A stretch of 64,000 nucleotides of DNA, from assembly GCA_965240325.2 (NCBI GenBank), contig OZ251225.1:2418001-2482000 (forward strand), given 5' to 3'. The first letter of the stretch is position 1. Each line of letters starts with the position of its first letter. A program made the translations under genes and the position numbers. The notes below the pieces were generated by a model. It was not told the DNA's origin. It saw only the letters and a list, made by a program, of their open reading frames with translations, and ran no database searches. This DNA is from Rebecca billardiae RCC1528 (taxonomy: Eukaryota > Protista > Haptophyta). Below, piece after piece: positions 46,524-55,722 of the stretch.

Positions 46524-47150
46524 TTACCAGTCCAAACGGGCGACTTTGCGATGTTCTTTGAGGCCTGTCTGCGGGCACTGCATCTCGGCGAATGTGAGCG
46601 GCACCATCGTCTTGCCCGCACCACTGCGCGCGAAGATGACGCCAAGCTCGTTCTCGGCGGTGGACAGGTAGTAAGATCTCGAGTCACCGAGCGAGAGGAC
46701 ACGAGCACGCACGACGTCGCCGGGGCGCACACATTTGAACATCTCGACCGCGTCCTTGTCAAAAGGGCGCACGTCCTCCTTCCTGATCAGACCAGACGCT
46801 GGCTCCTGCAGGACGGCTGCGCCGCCCGCCGTGCAGACGACGTCCACGTTTGCGAGCCGGGGCGTGATTCGGACCACACGACACAACACCACCTCGCCGA
46901 CGGAGGGCATCAGCGAGGGCGCCCGCCCGCGTGCCTCCACCGTGAGGACACGAGACCCGCCGGCCTGCCTGGAAACGGTGCCAACCATCGATGCGCGCAC
47001 GAAGCCATCTCCATCGTCGTACGCGCCCGGGCCTGCCTCGTACTCCTCTGTGGAGCCGAGAGCGTCTCCCGGCGTGACGATGGCGCCCCCAGTGGGGCCA
47101 GTGCCAGCACCAGCGGACTCTGCCACGCGAGTGCGCTTTCGCGACGCCAT
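46524..47150 (-). CDS. CSL4: exosome complex component Csl4/EXOSC1
   Basis: VTPGDALG..YEAGPGAY, S1 domain GLIRKEDVR...RPGDVVRARVLSLGD..YYLSTAENELGV, Zn-ribbon-like MQCPQTGLKEHRKVA. Confidence 0.95.
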   Translation of the reverse strand: MASRKRTRVAESAGAGTGPTGGAIVTPGDALGSTEEYEAGPGAYDDGDGFVRASMVGTVSRQAGGSRVLTVEARGRAPSLMPSVGEVVLCRVVRITPRLANVDVVCTAGGAAVLQEPASGLIRKEDVRPFDKDAVEMFKCVRPGDVVRARVLSLGDSRSYYLSTAENELGVIFARSGAGKTMVPLTFAEMQCPQTGLKEHRKVARLDW

Positions 47151-47359
47151 GAATGTGAGCGACGATCAACGACGTCGATCGCCGATTCATTGCGGATCAC
47201 CGGACAGCACAGCAGCCGAGCCCACCGCCGCCGAGCGAGCGACCCGGACGCGCGATCATCGCGAGACGACGCGATCGCGGCGCGCCGGTGCGGCCTGCGA
47301 GAGCGCGATATTTTTCACATCGCGGTGCGTGTGCGTGCATCCGGCCAGCGCCGCACGCC

Positions 47360-48495
47360 ATGTCGGGCTGGGATGACCTCGACTTTATGAAGAAGTTCAA
47401 GGCAGTGGTCGACAAGTCCACTGGCGAGACCATCATGGTGGCAAGCGACGCGCCCGAGTACGAGCTCGACGCGTCGGGCAATATTGTCGGCGGCTTGCCC
47501 GCAGACAAGGCGTCCGACGGAACGGGCGGTTCCGAGGCGCCGTCGACGGGCTTCAACTTCGGCACGGCCGCTGGCGCCAGCGGTGGCCCGGCGAAATTCT
47601 CGTTCGGCGTGCCGACGCCACAGGCCGGCGCCAGCGGCGCGGCACCCGGGTTCACGTTTGGTGGCGGGGCGAGCGGCGCGGGCGCAGGCGGCGGCGGAAG
47701 TGGAGGGTTCGCGTTCGGTGGCGGGGGTGGGTCGGCGCCGACGAATTTCTCCTTCGGCGTTGGCGCAGGCGCGCCCGCCTTCGGCGCCGACGCGGGCAAG
47801 CGCAAGGCCTCGGACGATCCAGCAGCTGGCGTGCCCAAGCGCGGCAAGCGGCGCGCGATGGCTCGCACCGGCGACGAGACGGGCGGCGTGTACGTCGCGG
47901 GGAACGGAGACTGCGGGCAGATGGGGCTGGGCGAAGACGAGGCGCTGATGGAGTGCGCCACCCCTGCGCCTATCCCCAGCCTCGCGGCGGAGGGTGTCGT
48001 CTCTGTCGCGTGCGGTGGCATGCACTCGGTCGTCGTCACGCGCGGCGGCCGGCTGTGGACGTGGGGCTGCAACGACGACTGTGCGCTCGGCCGCCCGGGC
48101 GACGAGTCGCGGCCGGGGCTGGTGGCTGGCGAGCTGACGTACGCACGCGTCAAGGCGGTCTGCGCGGGCGACTGCCATACCGCCGCGCTGCTCGACGACG
48201 GGCGCGTCTTCTCGTGGGGCACCTACAGGGACTCGAACGGGTACATTGGGTATGCACCCGCCAAGGGGGGCGGCAGCGCCAACGTGCTCAAGGCGGAGAT
48301 GCCGGTACTCGTGCCGGGGCTGACGGGTGTGCGCATCACCGCCATTGCGAGCGGCTCGAACCACACCCTCGCCATCTGCCGCGGCTCGCCTGCCCTGTAC
48401 GCGTGGGGCTGCGGCGAGCAGGGCCAGCTCGGCCGCTCCGTGAGCAAGGGGATGGCCGTGGCCAACCTTGTGCCTGCCGTGCCCGCACTCACGAT

Positions 48496-48528
<33 letters not shown>

Positions 48529-49498
48529 GACGCCGTCGCTTCGCGTGCTCAACGCCAACTTTGTGACGCACGTCGACGGGCTGCTCAAGTCCGACCCGCA
48601 CGGGGACTGGTCGGGCGCCGTGCAGCAGTTCATCGCCCACCGCGCCGCTGTGCTCGACGGGAGCGCGCCCGCGGGCGCAGAGGCATCCGCAAACCCGCCA
48701 GGCGATGGCGTCGGGCTCGAGGGAGTCTTCGCGGGATCTTACCACTCGTTCGCGCTCACGACAGACGGCGCCGTGTATGCCTTCGGCCTGAACAACATGG
48801 GCCAGCTCGGCGTGGGCGACCTGCTCGGCAAGGAGAGCATGACGATGACGCCCCAGCGCGTGCCCGGTGTGCGCGCGGCCCCATTTGGCTGGCTCACTCC
48901 CCGAAGAGGTGGCCCGCCGTGCGTGCCTGTGCTCATGCGCGTCCTGCGGTGCGCCGTGCGCAGGTCTCGACGGCAAGGGCGTCACGATGCTGCACGGGGG
49001 CGAGCACCACTCAGTCGCCCTCACTCGCGGGGGTGCGCCGCACCGCAGCGCGCGCGTTGCGGGCGACACGCGCGTTTGCTCACGCCGCTGGGCTCGCATG
49101 CGCACTCCACTCACCCTGCGCCGTCCGCGCCTGCGAACGCGCCCGCGTCGGCACTGCGCCCAGGGGATGTGTACGTCTTCGGACGTGGCGACTCGAACCA
49201 ACTCGGGCTGGGTGACGGGAAGGAGCAGCACAAGGCGCCGCAGCTCGTGGAGCGGCTCAAGGGGTTCGGCGTGCACAAGGTGTGCTGCGGCTCCAACCAG
49301 ACGGCTGCCGTGACCACCGCTGGCGAGCTGTACACCTGGGGCTTTGGCGAGATGTACCAGCTATGCAACGGGAAGATGAAAGACTGCGTGACGCCGTACC
49401 TCGTTGAGAGCGCGCCGCTGGGCAGCAGGCGTGTGCTCGACGTGGGCATGGGCGGCCAGCACACGGTGGTGCTTGCCACAGAGTCGGAGGAATCGTGA
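47360..49498 (+). CDS. RCC1: RCC1 (Ran GEF) with N-terminal FG repeats, bipartite NLS and Nup50-like insertion; introns 48867-48963, 49033-49163
   Basis: GNGDCGQMGLG, ACGGMHS, WTWGCNDDCALGR, AGDCHTAAL..DGRVFSWGTYRDSNG, WGCGEQGQLGR, FGLNNMGQLG, YTWGFGEMYQL, GGQHT. These match orthologue-type RCC1 motifs. Confidence 0.88.
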
Positions 49499-50323: not shown

Positions 50324-53300
50324 ATGGAGGTCAAGCTCCTGCGCGTCAGGGTGCAGGCGTTGACGCGCGCGGCGCTGCTGCTGGTTCTCGTGGCTCCCGC
50401 TTCGTGCGCTGTCACGGCGAATCTCGAGCATCACTTCCGGTTCGACAACTCCCTCACCTCGGAGGTGTCGGCTGACTCGACGACATTCTCAGTCAGTGCC
50501 GGCTCGGCGACGTACACCGAAGGGCAAATCGTCTCGGCCTTCGACTGCAACGGCGCGAACACGCTCGTCACCGGGACAGCGATCAGCGCCATATCTGGCG
50601 CAAATCCGGTCTCCATCTCGCTGTGGCTTCGCGTCGACGGGCTCTCTGCGGATGCGGGCCTGCTGTCCGTCGGCAGTGAGGCCGTGTTCGATGAGAACCT
50701 GCTCGAGGTGCAGATTAGCGCGGGCGGCGATCTGCAGGTGGTGTTCGCCACGGTCGTCATCATGTCGGCGACCGCGTCCCTGTCGGCCGACGCGACCACG
50801 TGGCACCACGTGGCCTTCACGTCGTCGGGCAGCGCGCAAGCGCTCTACCTCGATGGGACCGACCTGGGCGCGTCCGGTGCGACCAACGACCTCACGACGG
50901 CCTCGACGGTGATGACGGTGTGCAAGGGCACCTCGTTGACCACTGTATTCAACGGGCTCATCGACGACCTGGCGATCCATTCGACCGAGCTCAGCTCGTC
51001 GGACGTGACGAGTATCTTCACGGATGGGAGCTCGTCCATCTCGGCGAGCGGCATCCCGTACGCTGCGTCGGTGTTCGCGCACTTCACGTTCAACAACGAC
51101 GTCACCGGCCTCACGCTCGCCTCGGGTACGGCGGCGTTCGCGGCGGGCGAGGTCGGTGCGGCGCTCGAGCTCGACGGCTCGACGGTCTTCACCGTCGACG
51201 ACATCGGTGCCGCCCCAGCGGCGTCGAACATCTCGGCCGCGGCGACGCGATCGTTTGCCTTCTGGTTCCGGCAGACGGCCGCAGAGCGCTCCACTTCGGG
51301 GACCACCCCGGCGATCCTGTCGTACGGCGCGTCGGGCACGCTCAACGCCTTTGACATCGGCTTGTCGTCGGGCAGCGTCGCTGTCTTCGCTGGCGGCACG
51401 AACAATCGGCTCGTGGCCAACGGCGCCGTGACGACGACGGACACGTGGTACCACGTGGCGGTCACGTACGACGACGGCGCGTACAAGATCTACATCGACG
51501 GCTCGCTGTCCAAGACGCTGGCGGACAAGACGCTCACGACGGGCGCGGGCTCGTCGGCAACGACGATCCAGATCGCCAATTCGGACAACAGCGTCGGCTT
51601 CGCGACGAACTTCGCCGGGCGGATGGACGACCTGGGCTTGTACACGGGTGTGCTCAAGCCGTCGCAGATCTCGACCATCTACACGGACGGTACGACCAAT
51701 GACAAGTCGCTGGCGGGGACCTCCCTGTCTCCGCCGCCGCCGATGCCGCCGCCGAGCCCACCGCCGCCGCCGACGCCGCCGCCGAGCCCGCCACCGAGCC
51801 CACCGCCCTCCTCGCCGCCGAGCCCGCCGCCGAGCCCGCCGCCGAGCCCGCCGCCGAGCCCGCCGCCGAGCCCGCCGCCACCCTCGCCACCACCTCCCAA
51901 CGCGGCCACTCTCATCAACCACTTCAAGTTCGACACGAGCGCCACGGAGGACGCCGCCGGCAGCCTCACGCTCGCCGCGACGGGCTCCGCCGCGCTCGGC
52001 ACGCAGGGCGGCGGCCAGGTCGGCACCGCGCTCACGTGCGCGTCGTCGGGCTACCTGCAGTCGTCGGGCGCCGTGGACGCGGGGCTGACCGGCGCGGGGC
52101 TGCGCACGGTCGTGCTCTGGTTCAAGTACACCGGCTCGGGCACCAACTCGATCGTCTCGTACGGCGACTCGGGCAACTCGGAGGACCAGGTGTTCGATGT
52201 GCTCGTCTCCCTTTCGGGCGGCGCCAAGATCTGCCTCTTCAGCGGCTCGACGAACATCGACTGCGGCCCGGGGATCTCGACGAGCACGTGGCACCACGCC
52301 GCGTTCGCGTACGACGGCGCGACGAGCGTGTACATGTACCTGGACGGCACGGCGTACGCGTCCAACCCGGTGGCGATCTCGGGCGGCGCCCTCAACACGG
52401 CATCGTCGGCGCTGCGCGTCTGCAACTCGATCACGTCCTTCTACAACAGCTACGCGGGCGACGTGGACGACCTGGGCCTGTACACCAACATGCTCAGCGG
52501 CGCACAGGTGAGCACGATCGTCACCAACCAGGCGTCCGACATCAACCTGGCTGGCAGCTCGCTCTCGCCTCCGCCGCCGATGTCACCGCCGAGCCCGCCT
52601 CCGAGCCCGCCGCCGCCGAGCCCGCCGCCGAGCCCGCCGCCGAGCCCGCCGCCGAGCCCGCCGCCAAGCCCGCCGCCGAGCCCGCCACCGCCGAAATCGC
52701 CGCCGAGCCCGCCGCCGAGCCCGCCGCCGAGCCCGCCGCCGAGCCCGCCGCCGAGCCCGCCGCCGAGCTCGCCGCCGCCCTCGCCGCCGCCGCCCCCACC
52801 GGCCGAGGTCAAGCACGCGTACAACATGAACGGCAACACCGACGACCAGTGGGGTAACAACACCGCCACGCTGTACAACGGCACGCTCGTCGGGAGCCAG
52901 GTGACGTACATCGCCAACACGCTGACCGCGCTCGACCAGGCGATCTGCCTCTTCGACTCGGCCGACCAGCACCTCGAGGCGAGCGTGCCGCTCGACATCG
53001 TCGGGGACACGCCGCGCTCGGTGAGCCTGTGGTTCCAGCAGACCGGCACGCTTGAGGCGAAAGCCCTCGTCTCGTACGGCGCGACGACGTTCGTTGGCAT
53101 CCCGGACAAGTCGATCTTCGAGATCGGGCTGGCGTCGGGCGGGCTGGTCGAGGTGCAGCTCAAGGGCGTCACGCTCACGAGCACGACCTCGTACGTGCTC
53201 AACACGTGGTACCACGTCGCCGTGACGTACAACGGGTACCGCATGAAGCTGTACGTGAACGGCGTGGAGGACCAGTCGCTCGACATCGACTCGCTCGTCA

Positions 53301-55722
53301 CCGGCACGGACGGCGTGCTGCTGATGGGCACCGGGAGGTTCTACTCGTCTGAGGGCTTCAACGGGTACCTGGACGACATTGGCTTCTTCTACGGCGTGCT
53401 CGACTGCTGCTCCACCACCCTCGAGGGCTCGGTCGCCGAGCTGTACAACGGGGGAAACCCGACGAAGGATCTGATCTTCTACCACGCGCCGCCCCCGCCG
53501 CCGATGCCGCCGCCGAGCCCGCCGCCGCCACTCCCGCCGCCATCCCCCCCGCCGCCTCCGCAGCCGCCGAGCCCACCGCCGAGCCCGCCGCCACCAGCGC
53601 CGCCACCATCTCCACCGCCGTCGCCGCCACCGCCAACGCCCAAGCCGCCGAGCCCACCGCCAAGCCCGCCGCCGACGCCACCGCCATCGCCACCGCCGCC
53701 ATCGCCTCCGCCGTCGCCGCCGCCGCCGTCGCCGCCGCCGTCACCGCCGCCGCTTCCCCCGCCGAGCCCGCCGCCGAGCCCGCCGCCGAGCCCGCCGCCG
53801 CCACTCCCGCCACCGAGCCCGCCGCCGCCACTCCCGCCACCGAGCCCGCCACCCGCGCCGCCGCCAAGCCCACCGCCGCCGAGCCCGCCACCAACGCCGC
53901 CGCCATCGCCACCGCCAGAGCCGCCGCCTTCGCCGCCGCCATCGCCACCAAGCCCCCCGCCACCGATTCCCCCTCCGTCGCCGCCACCCCTCCCGCCGCC
54001 CAGCCCGCCGCCACCAGAGCCACACCCGCCGCCCAGCCCGCCCTCGCCGCCGCCCTCGCCGCCGCCCCAGCCGCCGCCGAGCCCGCCACCGAGCCCACCC
54101 AGCCCGCCGCCCATCCCACCGCCCTCGCCTCCCCCTGCGCCGCCGCCCTCGCCGCCGCCCTCGCCGCCACCTAGCTCGCCGCCCTCGCCGCCGCCCAGCC
54201 CGCCACCGTCGCCACCCCCGTCGCCGCCGCCAGCGCCGCCGCCCTCGCCGCCGCCCTCACCGCCGCCCAGCCCGCCACCCTCGCCGCCGCCGCCCTCGCC
54301 GCCACCCAGCCCGCCGCCTACGCCGCCGCCCAGCCCGCCGCCCAGCCCGCCGCCGCCCAGCCCGCCGCCATTGCCGCCGCCATCGCCCCCTCCATCGCCG
54401 CCACCCAGTCCACCGCCACCGAGCTCGCCGCCGCCGCCGCCGCCCACGCCGCCGCCCTCGCCGCCGCCCTCGCCGCCGCCCTCGCCGCCGCCACCCTCGC
54501 CGCCGCCCTCGCCGCCCTCGCCGCCACCCTCGCCGCCGCCGGCGCCTCCACCGAGCCCGCCCCCGCCGAGCCCGCCGCCCTCGCCGCCGCCGAGCTCGCC
54601 GCCGACCGCGTGGTGCGCGTTTGAGGACGAGCACCCGGTGGAGCTGTGCGACTGGACGCACGGCGGCTGCGAGTTCCGCTGGACGATGAACCAGGGCGAG
54701 ACGCCGTCGGCGTTCACCGGCCCGTCGGTCGACCACTCGACCAACTGGACCGACCCGGTCGTGCACGTGCCCTCGCCCTCCGAGGGCTACTACATCTTCA
54801 TCGAGAGCACGTGGACGCGCGCGCAGGGCGACAAGGCGTGCCTGGACTCGCCCGCGGTCAACGCGAGCGCCACGCCGGGCATGACGTTCTGGCGGCACAT
54901 GACGGGGCTGCACGTGGGCACGCTCAACGTGTACGCCAACACCTCGCACAACGCGTCCGAGGATGGGCTCCTCTTCTCGGCGAGCGAGGACGAGGGCGAC
55001 CGGTGGGTGTGGACGCACATCTGCCTCAGCGACTTTGGCCTCACCGGCATGCAGGCGGTGCGCATCGAGGGCGTGGTGGGGAGCGACTTCTCGGGCGACA
55101 TCGCGATCGACGACGTCCACTTTGGGGACTGCCTCGGTGCGACACGCGCGCCACCGATGCGTCCGGCACCCGCGGGGGCTTCGCCGCGCAGCGCCGCGAG
55201 CCATCGCGACGCACTCACGCCGCGATCCCTCGTGCGCGCGCGTGCGCGTGCGCGCGAGCAGTCACTCCGCCGCCGTCGCCGCCGCCGCCGCCGCCGCCGC
55301 CATCGCCACCGTCGCCGCCACCGCCGCCACCACCGCCGTGCGCGCGGCCGACTGAGTACGTGATCATCGAGGACGGCGGCATTTGCGATCAGACCGACCC
55401 CAGCGTGTACGGCGTGTGCGACCCGTGCGGCACCGAGTCGAGGTGTGCGCACTCGCAAGCGCGCGGCTCGCCGCGCTGAGCGAGAGCCCCAGCGAGCCGC
55501 GCTTGCCGGGCCTGCCCCGCCCTCACCGTGCGACGCTGCCCAACGCCCTGGCCTGCACTCGCGCGTCGCAGGGGCCCGCTCGACTGTGTGTGTGTGTCGT
55601 CGTACATCCGGCGCAAGCGCCGAGCAAACTCCCACGCCGCGGCTGCGCACAAGCGCGAGCTGCTCTTTGGCGGAGTGCCGGGCGGCGACGAGTTCTGCTA
55701 CTGCCAGGAGGTTGGGGCATGA
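50324..55722 (+). CDS. large secreted glycoprotein: signal peptide, 4 LamG/ConA-like (pentraxin-type) domains, SPPP extensin-like linkers, MAM domain, Cys-rich C-terminus; introns 55137-55261, 55443-55571
   Basis: Four repeats of HFxF..., WHHVAxT...LYxDG...FxGxxDDL. Long PPSPPP runs. MAM motifs CAFED..CDW, TGPSVDHS, GYYIFIES, GDIAIDDV. Confidence 0.88.
53488..54604 (+). repeat. coding low-complexity (Ser-Pro3-5)n tract, ~370 aa
   Basis: CCGCCGCCGAGC/CCCTCGCCGCCG-type units. Shorter tracts at ~51728-51898 and ~52564-52801. Confidence 0.95.

Follow-up and report, generated by a model that had tools for sequence, protein, structure and literature searches.

RCC1, Ran's guanine nucleotide exchange factor (GEF), is the textbook mark of chromatin, through which a cell senses the position of its nucleus and chromosomes. 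The factor is also known as Prp20 (Srm1) or Pim1. Human RCC1 has a seven-blade propeller, a beta-wedge, the residues D128, R206, H304 and H410, and a basic nuclear localisation signal (NLS) before blade 1. RCC1 contacts the nucleosome and DNA through R217 in the histone-binding switchback loop and through K232, R234 and R237 in the DNA-binding loop (PMC4750278). Here we describe a gene of the haptophyte Rebecca billardiae RCC1528 that is predicted to encode an RCC1 in which the DNA-binding loop has been replaced by a nucleoporin module. It lies on the forward strand at 47360-49498 of the window, by which we mean the whole stretch of 64,000 nucleotides that was analysed (GenBank assembly GCA_965240325.2, contig OZ251225.1, positions 2,418,001 to 2,482,000).

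The replacing module resembles a segment of Nup50 (Npap60) in vertebrates and Nup2 in yeast. Amino acids 144-189 of Nup50 are the minimal region for localisation to the nuclear pore complex (NPC); they bind Nup153 and MEL28/ELYS and have their counterpart in a part of the yeast Nup2 MAR (Holzer et al., PMC8634129). MAR residues 89-130, which match two AlphaFold helices (87-132), bind to Nup60 and are found at the envelope; in some MAR mutants, binding to the envelope is uncoupled from binding to chromosomes (PMC9071577). Binding and stimulation of RCC1 map to the Nup50 N-terminus, at G25/F27 and K36/R38 (PMC8634129). A 2025 paper on trypanosomes presents RCC1 as bound to chromatin and Nup50/Nup2 as a stimulator distinct from the GEF (PMC11825100).

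An earlier note on this DNA had read the locus as a RanGEF joined to nucleoporin-like FG repeats, with a bipartite NLS and, between two blades, a Gly-flanked insert related to the basket-targeting segment of Nup50/Nup2. It proposed that this Rosetta-stone fusion tethers RanGTP production to the pore. Our analysis favours the core of that proposal: we assign a probability of roughly 0.5-0.6 to the reading that haptophyte RCC1 is tethered to the nuclear basket, where RanGTP would be made at the pore rather than on chromatin only.

Several comparisons identify the product as an RCC1 orthologue with predicted exchange activity. The Pfam family RCC1 (PF00415) matches seven stretches of it (E-value 4.6e-67), RCC1_2 and WD40_RLD match as well, and phmmer places human RCC1 (1.3e-65) ahead of UVR8 (1.5e-51). 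AlphaFold2 models of two orthologues, P0005 and P0257, contain a complete seven-blade propeller, with a mean predicted local distance difference test score (pLDDT) of 87.0 and 80.6, respectively, and blades mostly above 90. In Foldseek, ranks 1-10 are held by human, Drosophila and yeast RCC1, as expected of a bona fide RCC1 rather than of other RLD proteins. The best matches are human RCC1 (1A12), Ran-RCC1 (1I2M) and the Drosophila RCC1-nucleosome structure (3MVD), with TM-scores by target of 0.88-0.89; yeast Prp20 is also found, and identity with human RCC1 is about 31-32% in the Foldseek structural alignment. Among named proteins, the top matches of a protein search come from the haptophytes Prymnesium, Chrysochromulina and Emiliania. 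Alignment to human RCC1 shows D128, the beta-wedge at 146-153 (YRDSNGYI), R206, H304 and H410 to be retained, and the N-terminal blades (47870-48490), which are delimited by Pfam and align to human residues 13-207, include the beta-wedge WGTYRDSNGYIG. The Ran-facing elements of the haptophyte propeller are, by these comparisons, predicted to be largely kept.

The nucleosome-facing side of the propeller is different. Residues 13-207 and 236-417 of human RCC1 can be aligned with the haptophyte sequence; residues 208-235 have no counterpart in the alignment. It is here that the insert is located, at 48491-48715 (amino acids 378-452), with its Gly/Ala-rich linkers (TIGGGGSGGGGGGTPSLRVLNANF...IAHRAAVLDGSAPAGAEASANPPGDGVG). 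In human RCC1 the unaligned segment comprises the switchback loop, where R217 lies, and the larger part of the DNA-binding loop, including K232 and R234; R237 comes immediately after. Between the GQLGR and LVP motifs, the stretch that holds the switchback loop has 13 residues in the window protein and 20 in human RCC1, making it 7 residues shorter, and it contains no Arg. R237 aligns to Gly or Asp, and what occupies the DNA-binding loop is a Nup50-type hairpin with uncharged Gly/Ala linkers. Given its position at human 208-235, the hairpin would sit on the nucleosome-facing side of the propeller, opposite the Ran-binding face. We infer that direct nucleosome binding has been lost in haptophyte RCC1.

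The hairpin itself occupies 48527-48649 (LRVLNANFVTHV...DPHGDW...QQFIAH), its two helices being placed by homology to the AlphaFold2 model of P0257. In the models the insert forms helices at residues 254-276 and 283-295 of P0005 and 348-369 and 376-388 of P0257, with pLDDT of about 82-92. Both helices lie outside the intact propeller, as the earlier note had expected of a structure model. An insert is present at the same place in every haptophyte RCC1 that could be aligned.

To search for relatives of the insert, we used a profile of 50 columns built from 24 haptophyte inserts and four look-alike segments that precede the propeller in other RCC1s, and ran it against 1.84 billion representative proteins with E-values scaled to the whole library. 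It matched 131 proteins at E<=0.001. Among the 61 matches of at least 200 amino acids, 24 contain a Ran_BP1 domain, 12 the NUP50 N-terminal domain and 9 RCC1 repeats. P0107 has the architecture NUP50 (4-53), motif (98-143, E-value 2.5e-10) and RanBP1 (215-337). In P0170 the motif lies at 144-187, behind a NUP50 domain at 2-68; this placement coincides with that of the NPC-targeting region in Xenopus/human (144-189; PMC8634129). Another match, P0199, carries the source name nucleoporin NUP2. The four non-haptophyte rows could have made this search circular, and a hidden Markov model (HMM) of haptophyte inserts alone was built to rule this out. On the same scale it still reached P0107 at 2.4e-7, P0123 at 2.5e-6 and P0170 at 5.7e-4. 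When hhalign compared the inserts with the motif from 15 RanBP1- or NUP50-domain proteins, the probability was 99.1% (E-value 4.4e-19) over 47 gap-free columns. The common pattern is R-A-L-N-x-x-F-x-x-(W)V ... P/D-x-x-D-W/L ... Y-L-x-H. We conclude from these profile matches that the insert and the basket-targeting hairpin of Nup50 (amino acids 144-189) and the Nup2 MAR are homologous; the relationship claimed in the earlier note is thereby upheld, and the targeting role it had given for the central segment agrees with published work (PMC8634129, PMC9071577). Against the PDB the insert profile gave chance-level matches alone (VPS4 MIT, a lipase chaperone; E>=0.17), and by sequence the search yielded no solved structure for the Nup50/Nup2 hairpin.

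The likeness to Nup50 and Nup2 extends to their FxFG repeats and ends there. Those proteins carry the hairpin in a disordered chain, whereas in the window protein it sits in a propeller loop. They also have an N-terminal NUP50 domain, which binds importin-alpha and RCC1, and a C-terminal RanBP1 domain. The window protein has neither: NUP50 (PF08911) gave no match at E<=10 in its N-terminus or at E<=1 in the whole open reading frame (ORF), RanBP1 (PF00638) gave no Pfam match in the protein, and the propeller forms its C-terminal end.

Compared with RCC1, Prp20 and Pim1, the window protein adds an FxFG domain and an N-terminal module. The FG domain (47552-47782) consists of five FxFG repeats and a terminal AFG, separated by uncharged Gly/Ala/Ser spacers. 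The repeats, all at the places given in the earlier note, start at 47552 (FNFG), 47597 (FSFG), 47651 (FTFG), 47708 (FAFG) and 47747 (FSFG). When the protein was shuffled, none of 20,000 permutations reached five FxFG motifs, the maximum being three. Between amino acids 50 and 145 all 11 Phe residues lie inside FxFG or AFG motifs, with Gly, Ala and Ser between them. The domain is conserved across haptophyte RCC1s, each orthologue having three to six FxF[GA] motifs; the Prymnesium orthologue gives a weak match to Pfam Nucleoporin_FG, and the region is predicted to be disordered in the AlphaFold2 model of an orthologue. Directly before blade 1 stands the bipartite NLS KRK-x10-KRGKRR (approximately 47798-47854, amino acids 147-165). 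A basic stretch is kept at this place in the orthologues, and the basic tail of human RCC1 aligns there.

The N-terminal module (47360-47497) comprises about 46 amino acids, with the pattern MSGW.DL..KF..V.DKSTGE.IMV...Y.LD..GNI, and occurs in all full-length haptophyte orthologues. In the AlphaFold2 model of an orthologue it folds into small beta hairpins with pLDDT of about 73, and no relatives were found in Pfam or the ESM Atlas. Its MSGW start differs from animal RCC1, whose methylated N-terminus is of the (S/P)PK type. The leader GWGDLL.KF recurs as GWGNLLQKF in an RCC1 of an uncultured protist, P0048 (residues 12-21), where it precedes a zinc finger. We asked whether the module could descend from a RanBP2-type zinc finger that has lost its Cys residues, and rejected this idea, as hhalign gave a probability of 0.3% over just 5 columns.

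The window is very GC-rich (GC 0.59-0.78 per 2-kb window), and its ORF list contains a frame of 736 amino acids (47288-49498) with Arg-rich nonsense in the middle and a good RCC1 blade, LDGKGVTMLHGGEHHSVALTRGG, in the neighbouring frame. We enumerated all GT..AG pairs, and a single model preserves the frame and both flanking blades while restoring LDGKGVTMLHGGEHHSVALTRGG. It has three exons and encodes 636 amino acids. Exon 1 (47360-48866) starts at the MSGW that is conserved in orthologues and covers the N-terminal module, FxFG region, NLS, most blades and the hairpin insert. Exon 2 (48964-49032) is a micro-exon of 69 nt that supplies the blade segment LDGKGVTMLHGGEHHSVALTRGG and has a counterpart in a sister species, and exon 3 (49164-49498) encodes the last blades and the stop codon, in agreement with alignments to human RCC1 and to KAJ1630995.1. 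Intron 1 (48867-48963, 97 nt) and intron 2 (49033-49163, 131 nt) are both GT..AG and flat in GC by codon position. The earlier note had read 47360-49498 as one exon, and here it was mistaken: it missed both introns, and the Arg-rich stretch of its 712-amino-acid product is intron together with exon in the wrong frame. The same error recurs in the database models of close relatives P0001-P0004, in which both introns are read through and the 3' end is Arg/Ala-rich nonsense. Public calls of the RCC1 gene in GC-rich contigs of haptophytes thus often have an incorrect 3' end.

Two sets of data support the spliced model and bear on whether the insert is coding. KAJ1630995.1 (P0257), an annotated protein of Pavlovales sp., is colinear with the spliced product over its full length and across both junctions, with 377 identical residues. 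In the same sister species, three blocks of a 1921-nt JGI contig (L001) match the genome (L002) with 98-100% identity. Two stretches of the genome, about 174 and 313 nt long, have no counterpart in L001; they flank the micro-exon at the positions of the window introns, and L001 keeps the insert. Because both intron stretches of L002 are missing from it, L001 is a spliced transcript. GC at codon positions 1/2/3 is 0.76/0.59/0.88 in the insert and 0.73/0.42/0.93 in the hairpin, against 0.68/0.56/0.87 in the whole coding sequence. From this periodicity, the conservation among haptophytes and the sister-species transcript, we conclude that the insert is exonic, which the earlier note had named as a point to be checked. 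An in-frame intron across the insert, the other model we considered, was rejected on the periodicity and the transcript.

These features suggest how RCC1 could be placed at the pore. The NLS would import it into the nucleus, where the hairpin would dock it on the haptophyte counterpart of Nup153/Nup60, on ELYS, or on both, at the nuclear side of the pore and with the Ran-binding face free. The FxFG repeats would keep transport receptors near the exchange site. NTF2-RanGDP is a likely one, since NTF2 binds FxFG repeats and carries RanGDP, and it would deliver the substrate beside the site of exchange. With the hairpin docked and the receptors held, we propose that RanGTP would be produced at the pore exit and not on chromatin alone. 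We also entertain a more far-reaching version, which is tentative and somewhat unlikely to hold in full: the RanGEF of haptophytes would be a mobile basket nucleoporin that has given up direct nucleosome binding, is held by its hairpin on the Nup153/Nup60 counterpart, captures NTF2-RanGDP with its own FxFG repeats and generates the RanGTP gradient at the pore. On a wider view, the occurrence of RCC1 fusions with Nup50 modules in haptophytes, oomycetes and green algae would make the vertebrate Nup50-RCC1 partnership ancient, and in such lineages RCC1 may assume part of the role of Nup50.

The main rival to basket tethering is that the hairpin substitutes one chromatin tether for another, through ELYS or directly, with RCC1 staying on chromatin and the FG repeats aiding only import or receptor recycling. 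The hairpin lies exactly on the side of the propeller that faces the nucleosome (PMC4750278), Nup50 144-189 binds MEL28/ELYS as well as Nup153 through sites that could not be separated (PMC8634129), and some yeast MAR mutants lose meiotic-chromosome binding yet stay at the envelope (PMC9071577). Against this, the segment determines pore localisation in both vertebrates and yeast (PMC8634129, PMC9071577), and the FG repeats, together with the RanBP2-type zinc fingers on RCC1s of other lineages, suggest a pore setting. We regard a substitute chromatin tether as unlikely, yet as the explanation that competes most seriously. Less probable by a clear step is that the added modules have nothing to do with localisation, the hairpin serving the propeller itself, as a regulatory or intramolecular element, and the FG region acting as a flexible linker or import aid. 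In its favour, oomycete RCC1s may carry the RCC1-stimulating N-terminal segment of Nup50 in cis, so that some fused parts might affect catalysis (PMC8634129). The haptophyte protein has no recognisable segment of this kind, however. Its hairpin keeps the family positions (L-N-x-x-F, V, P/D..D-W, Y/F-x-x-H), as expected if the partner is the same, and its Gly linkers suggest that the module is freely presented. Finally, the resemblance might be an artefact, either because the insert is an in-frame intron left unspliced or because it is a low-complexity loop with a chance likeness to Nup50. Ten in-frame GT..AG pairs are possible across the insert, and its flanks are low-complexity Gly/Ala. This explanation is refuted by the coding evidence, the haptophyte-wide conservation and the library-wide significant matches to proteins with NUP50 and RanBP1 domains, and we give it next to no weight.

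Several points nevertheless weigh against placement of an active RanGEF at the basket. The equivalent of human D182 is Asn (ASGSNH, approximately 48340-48357) in the window and in all Pavlovales-type orthologues; Asp is found at this position in Prymnesiophyceae, and the residue is absent (GSSFN) from oomycete RCC1s. In human RCC1 an intramolecular hydrogen bond from D182 holds R147 in position, and the D182A mutant has a strongly reduced kcat (PMC2898669). The hydrogen bond could be preserved by Asn, and full GEF activity is here an assumption. The hairpin could also be a chromatin tether because meiotic chromosomes are among the targets of the Nup2 MAR (PMC9071577) and chromatin-associated ELYS is a partner of the Nup50 segment. 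The transcript is not from R. billardiae but from a sister species with about 60% identity. The hhalign comparison is not fully independent because its Nup50-type sequences came from the insert-containing profile. A standalone haptophyte Nup50 was neither identified nor excluded: a word-based search with P0107 found P0107 alone, and cluster names carried no haptophyte label. The spacers of typical FxFG nucleoporins, moreover, differ from the uncharged ones found here.

Fusions of RCC1 with the same hairpin occur outside haptophytes, in a different arrangement. Oomycete RCC1s ([Pythium] brassicae, Globisporangium ultimum, Peronosclerospora sorghi) carry it directly before blade 1, as do several RCC1s of uncultured protists (P0048, P0130). 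The RCC1 of the green alga Chloropicon primus (P0162, QDZ17650.1) has a Nup50-type hairpin at residues 7-54, likewise directly before blade 1, which shows that the fusion extends beyond haptophytes and stramenopiles. Because oomycete and Chloropicon RCC1s share the hairpin, coupling of RCC1 to a Nup50 module appears to be recurrent outside animals and fungi. Among the RCC1s compared, a hairpin inside the propeller was found only in haptophytes. P0048 has further features of the haptophyte protein, namely FG repeats, which are also present in P0050 and P0052, and the similar start. One or two RanBP2-type zinc fingers are found by Pfam at the N-termini of the unidentified-protist RCC1s P0035, P0048 and P0050. 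In Nup153, fingers of this type bind RanGDP; here they provide the RanGEF with a second kind of nucleoporin module.

The comparison also shows which of these proteins may be informative about the contact between Nup50 and RCC1. Of the Rosetta-stone proposal for the haptophyte gene, the fusion of a Nup153/ELYS-binding hairpin and FG repeats to RCC1 stands. The part of Nup50 that stimulates RCC1, its N-terminus, is not among the fused parts, and without it the haptophyte gene cannot serve as a Rosetta stone for the actual contact between Nup50 and RCC1. In oomycetes and P0048, by contrast, the hairpin is preceded by a segment, KR.R..-(I/V)SKE.Y.A ... F.RAS..L..RK, that resembles the N-termini of the NUP50-domain proteins P0169 and P0170. 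Four of eight such sequences match Pfam NUP50 (best E-value 0.001, below the gathering score), and the segment includes those positions on which RCC1 binding depends in vertebrates. An ESM Atlas look-up of the Nup50-like region of P0048 returned nothing usable. With a NUP50-like N-terminus and then a hairpin ahead of the propeller, the oomycete and P0048 proteins may, on this weak match, be a true Rosetta stone for the contact.

The surroundings of the gene support its orthology with the Pavlovales sp. gene. At 46524-47150, on the reverse strand, lies a gene for the exosome subunit CSL4/EXOSC1 (Pfam EXOSC1, 1.9e-15; ECR1_N, 9.5e-13), divergent from RCC1; the two start codons are about 210 nt apart. 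Pavlovales sp. (GCA_026770615.1) has this pair of neighbours too. Because the products are colinear and the divergent neighbour is shared, we take the two RCC1 genes to be orthologues, which places the source of the window among haptophytes of the Pavlovales type. Downstream, on the forward strand (50324-55363), an ORF of 1679 amino acids contains repeated Laminin_G_3/concanavalin-like domains (E-value 1.5e-34) with long, extensin-like PPSPPP runs between them; its C-terminal part has no Pfam match, and GC skew is strongly negative in the region where it lies (52-56 kb).

We found no description of an RCC1 fused to FG repeats or Nup50 modules in the full-text literature, a coverage that leaves most subscription journals outside. 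The enzyme and each of the modules are already known. It is the combination that appears to be new, and its most striking aspect is the exchange of a chromatin-binding loop for a pore-targeting module. The remodelled chromatin loops, the basket module and the FG repeats suggest an alternative placement of the source of RanGTP. The fusions also provide independent evolutionary support for the link between Nup50 and RCC1 that was reported in 2021 (PMC8634129). They are, in addition, natural constructs with which to ask what the conserved Nup50/Nup2 hairpin binds, and how a GEF placed at the pore would affect transport or the re-formation of the envelope after mitosis.

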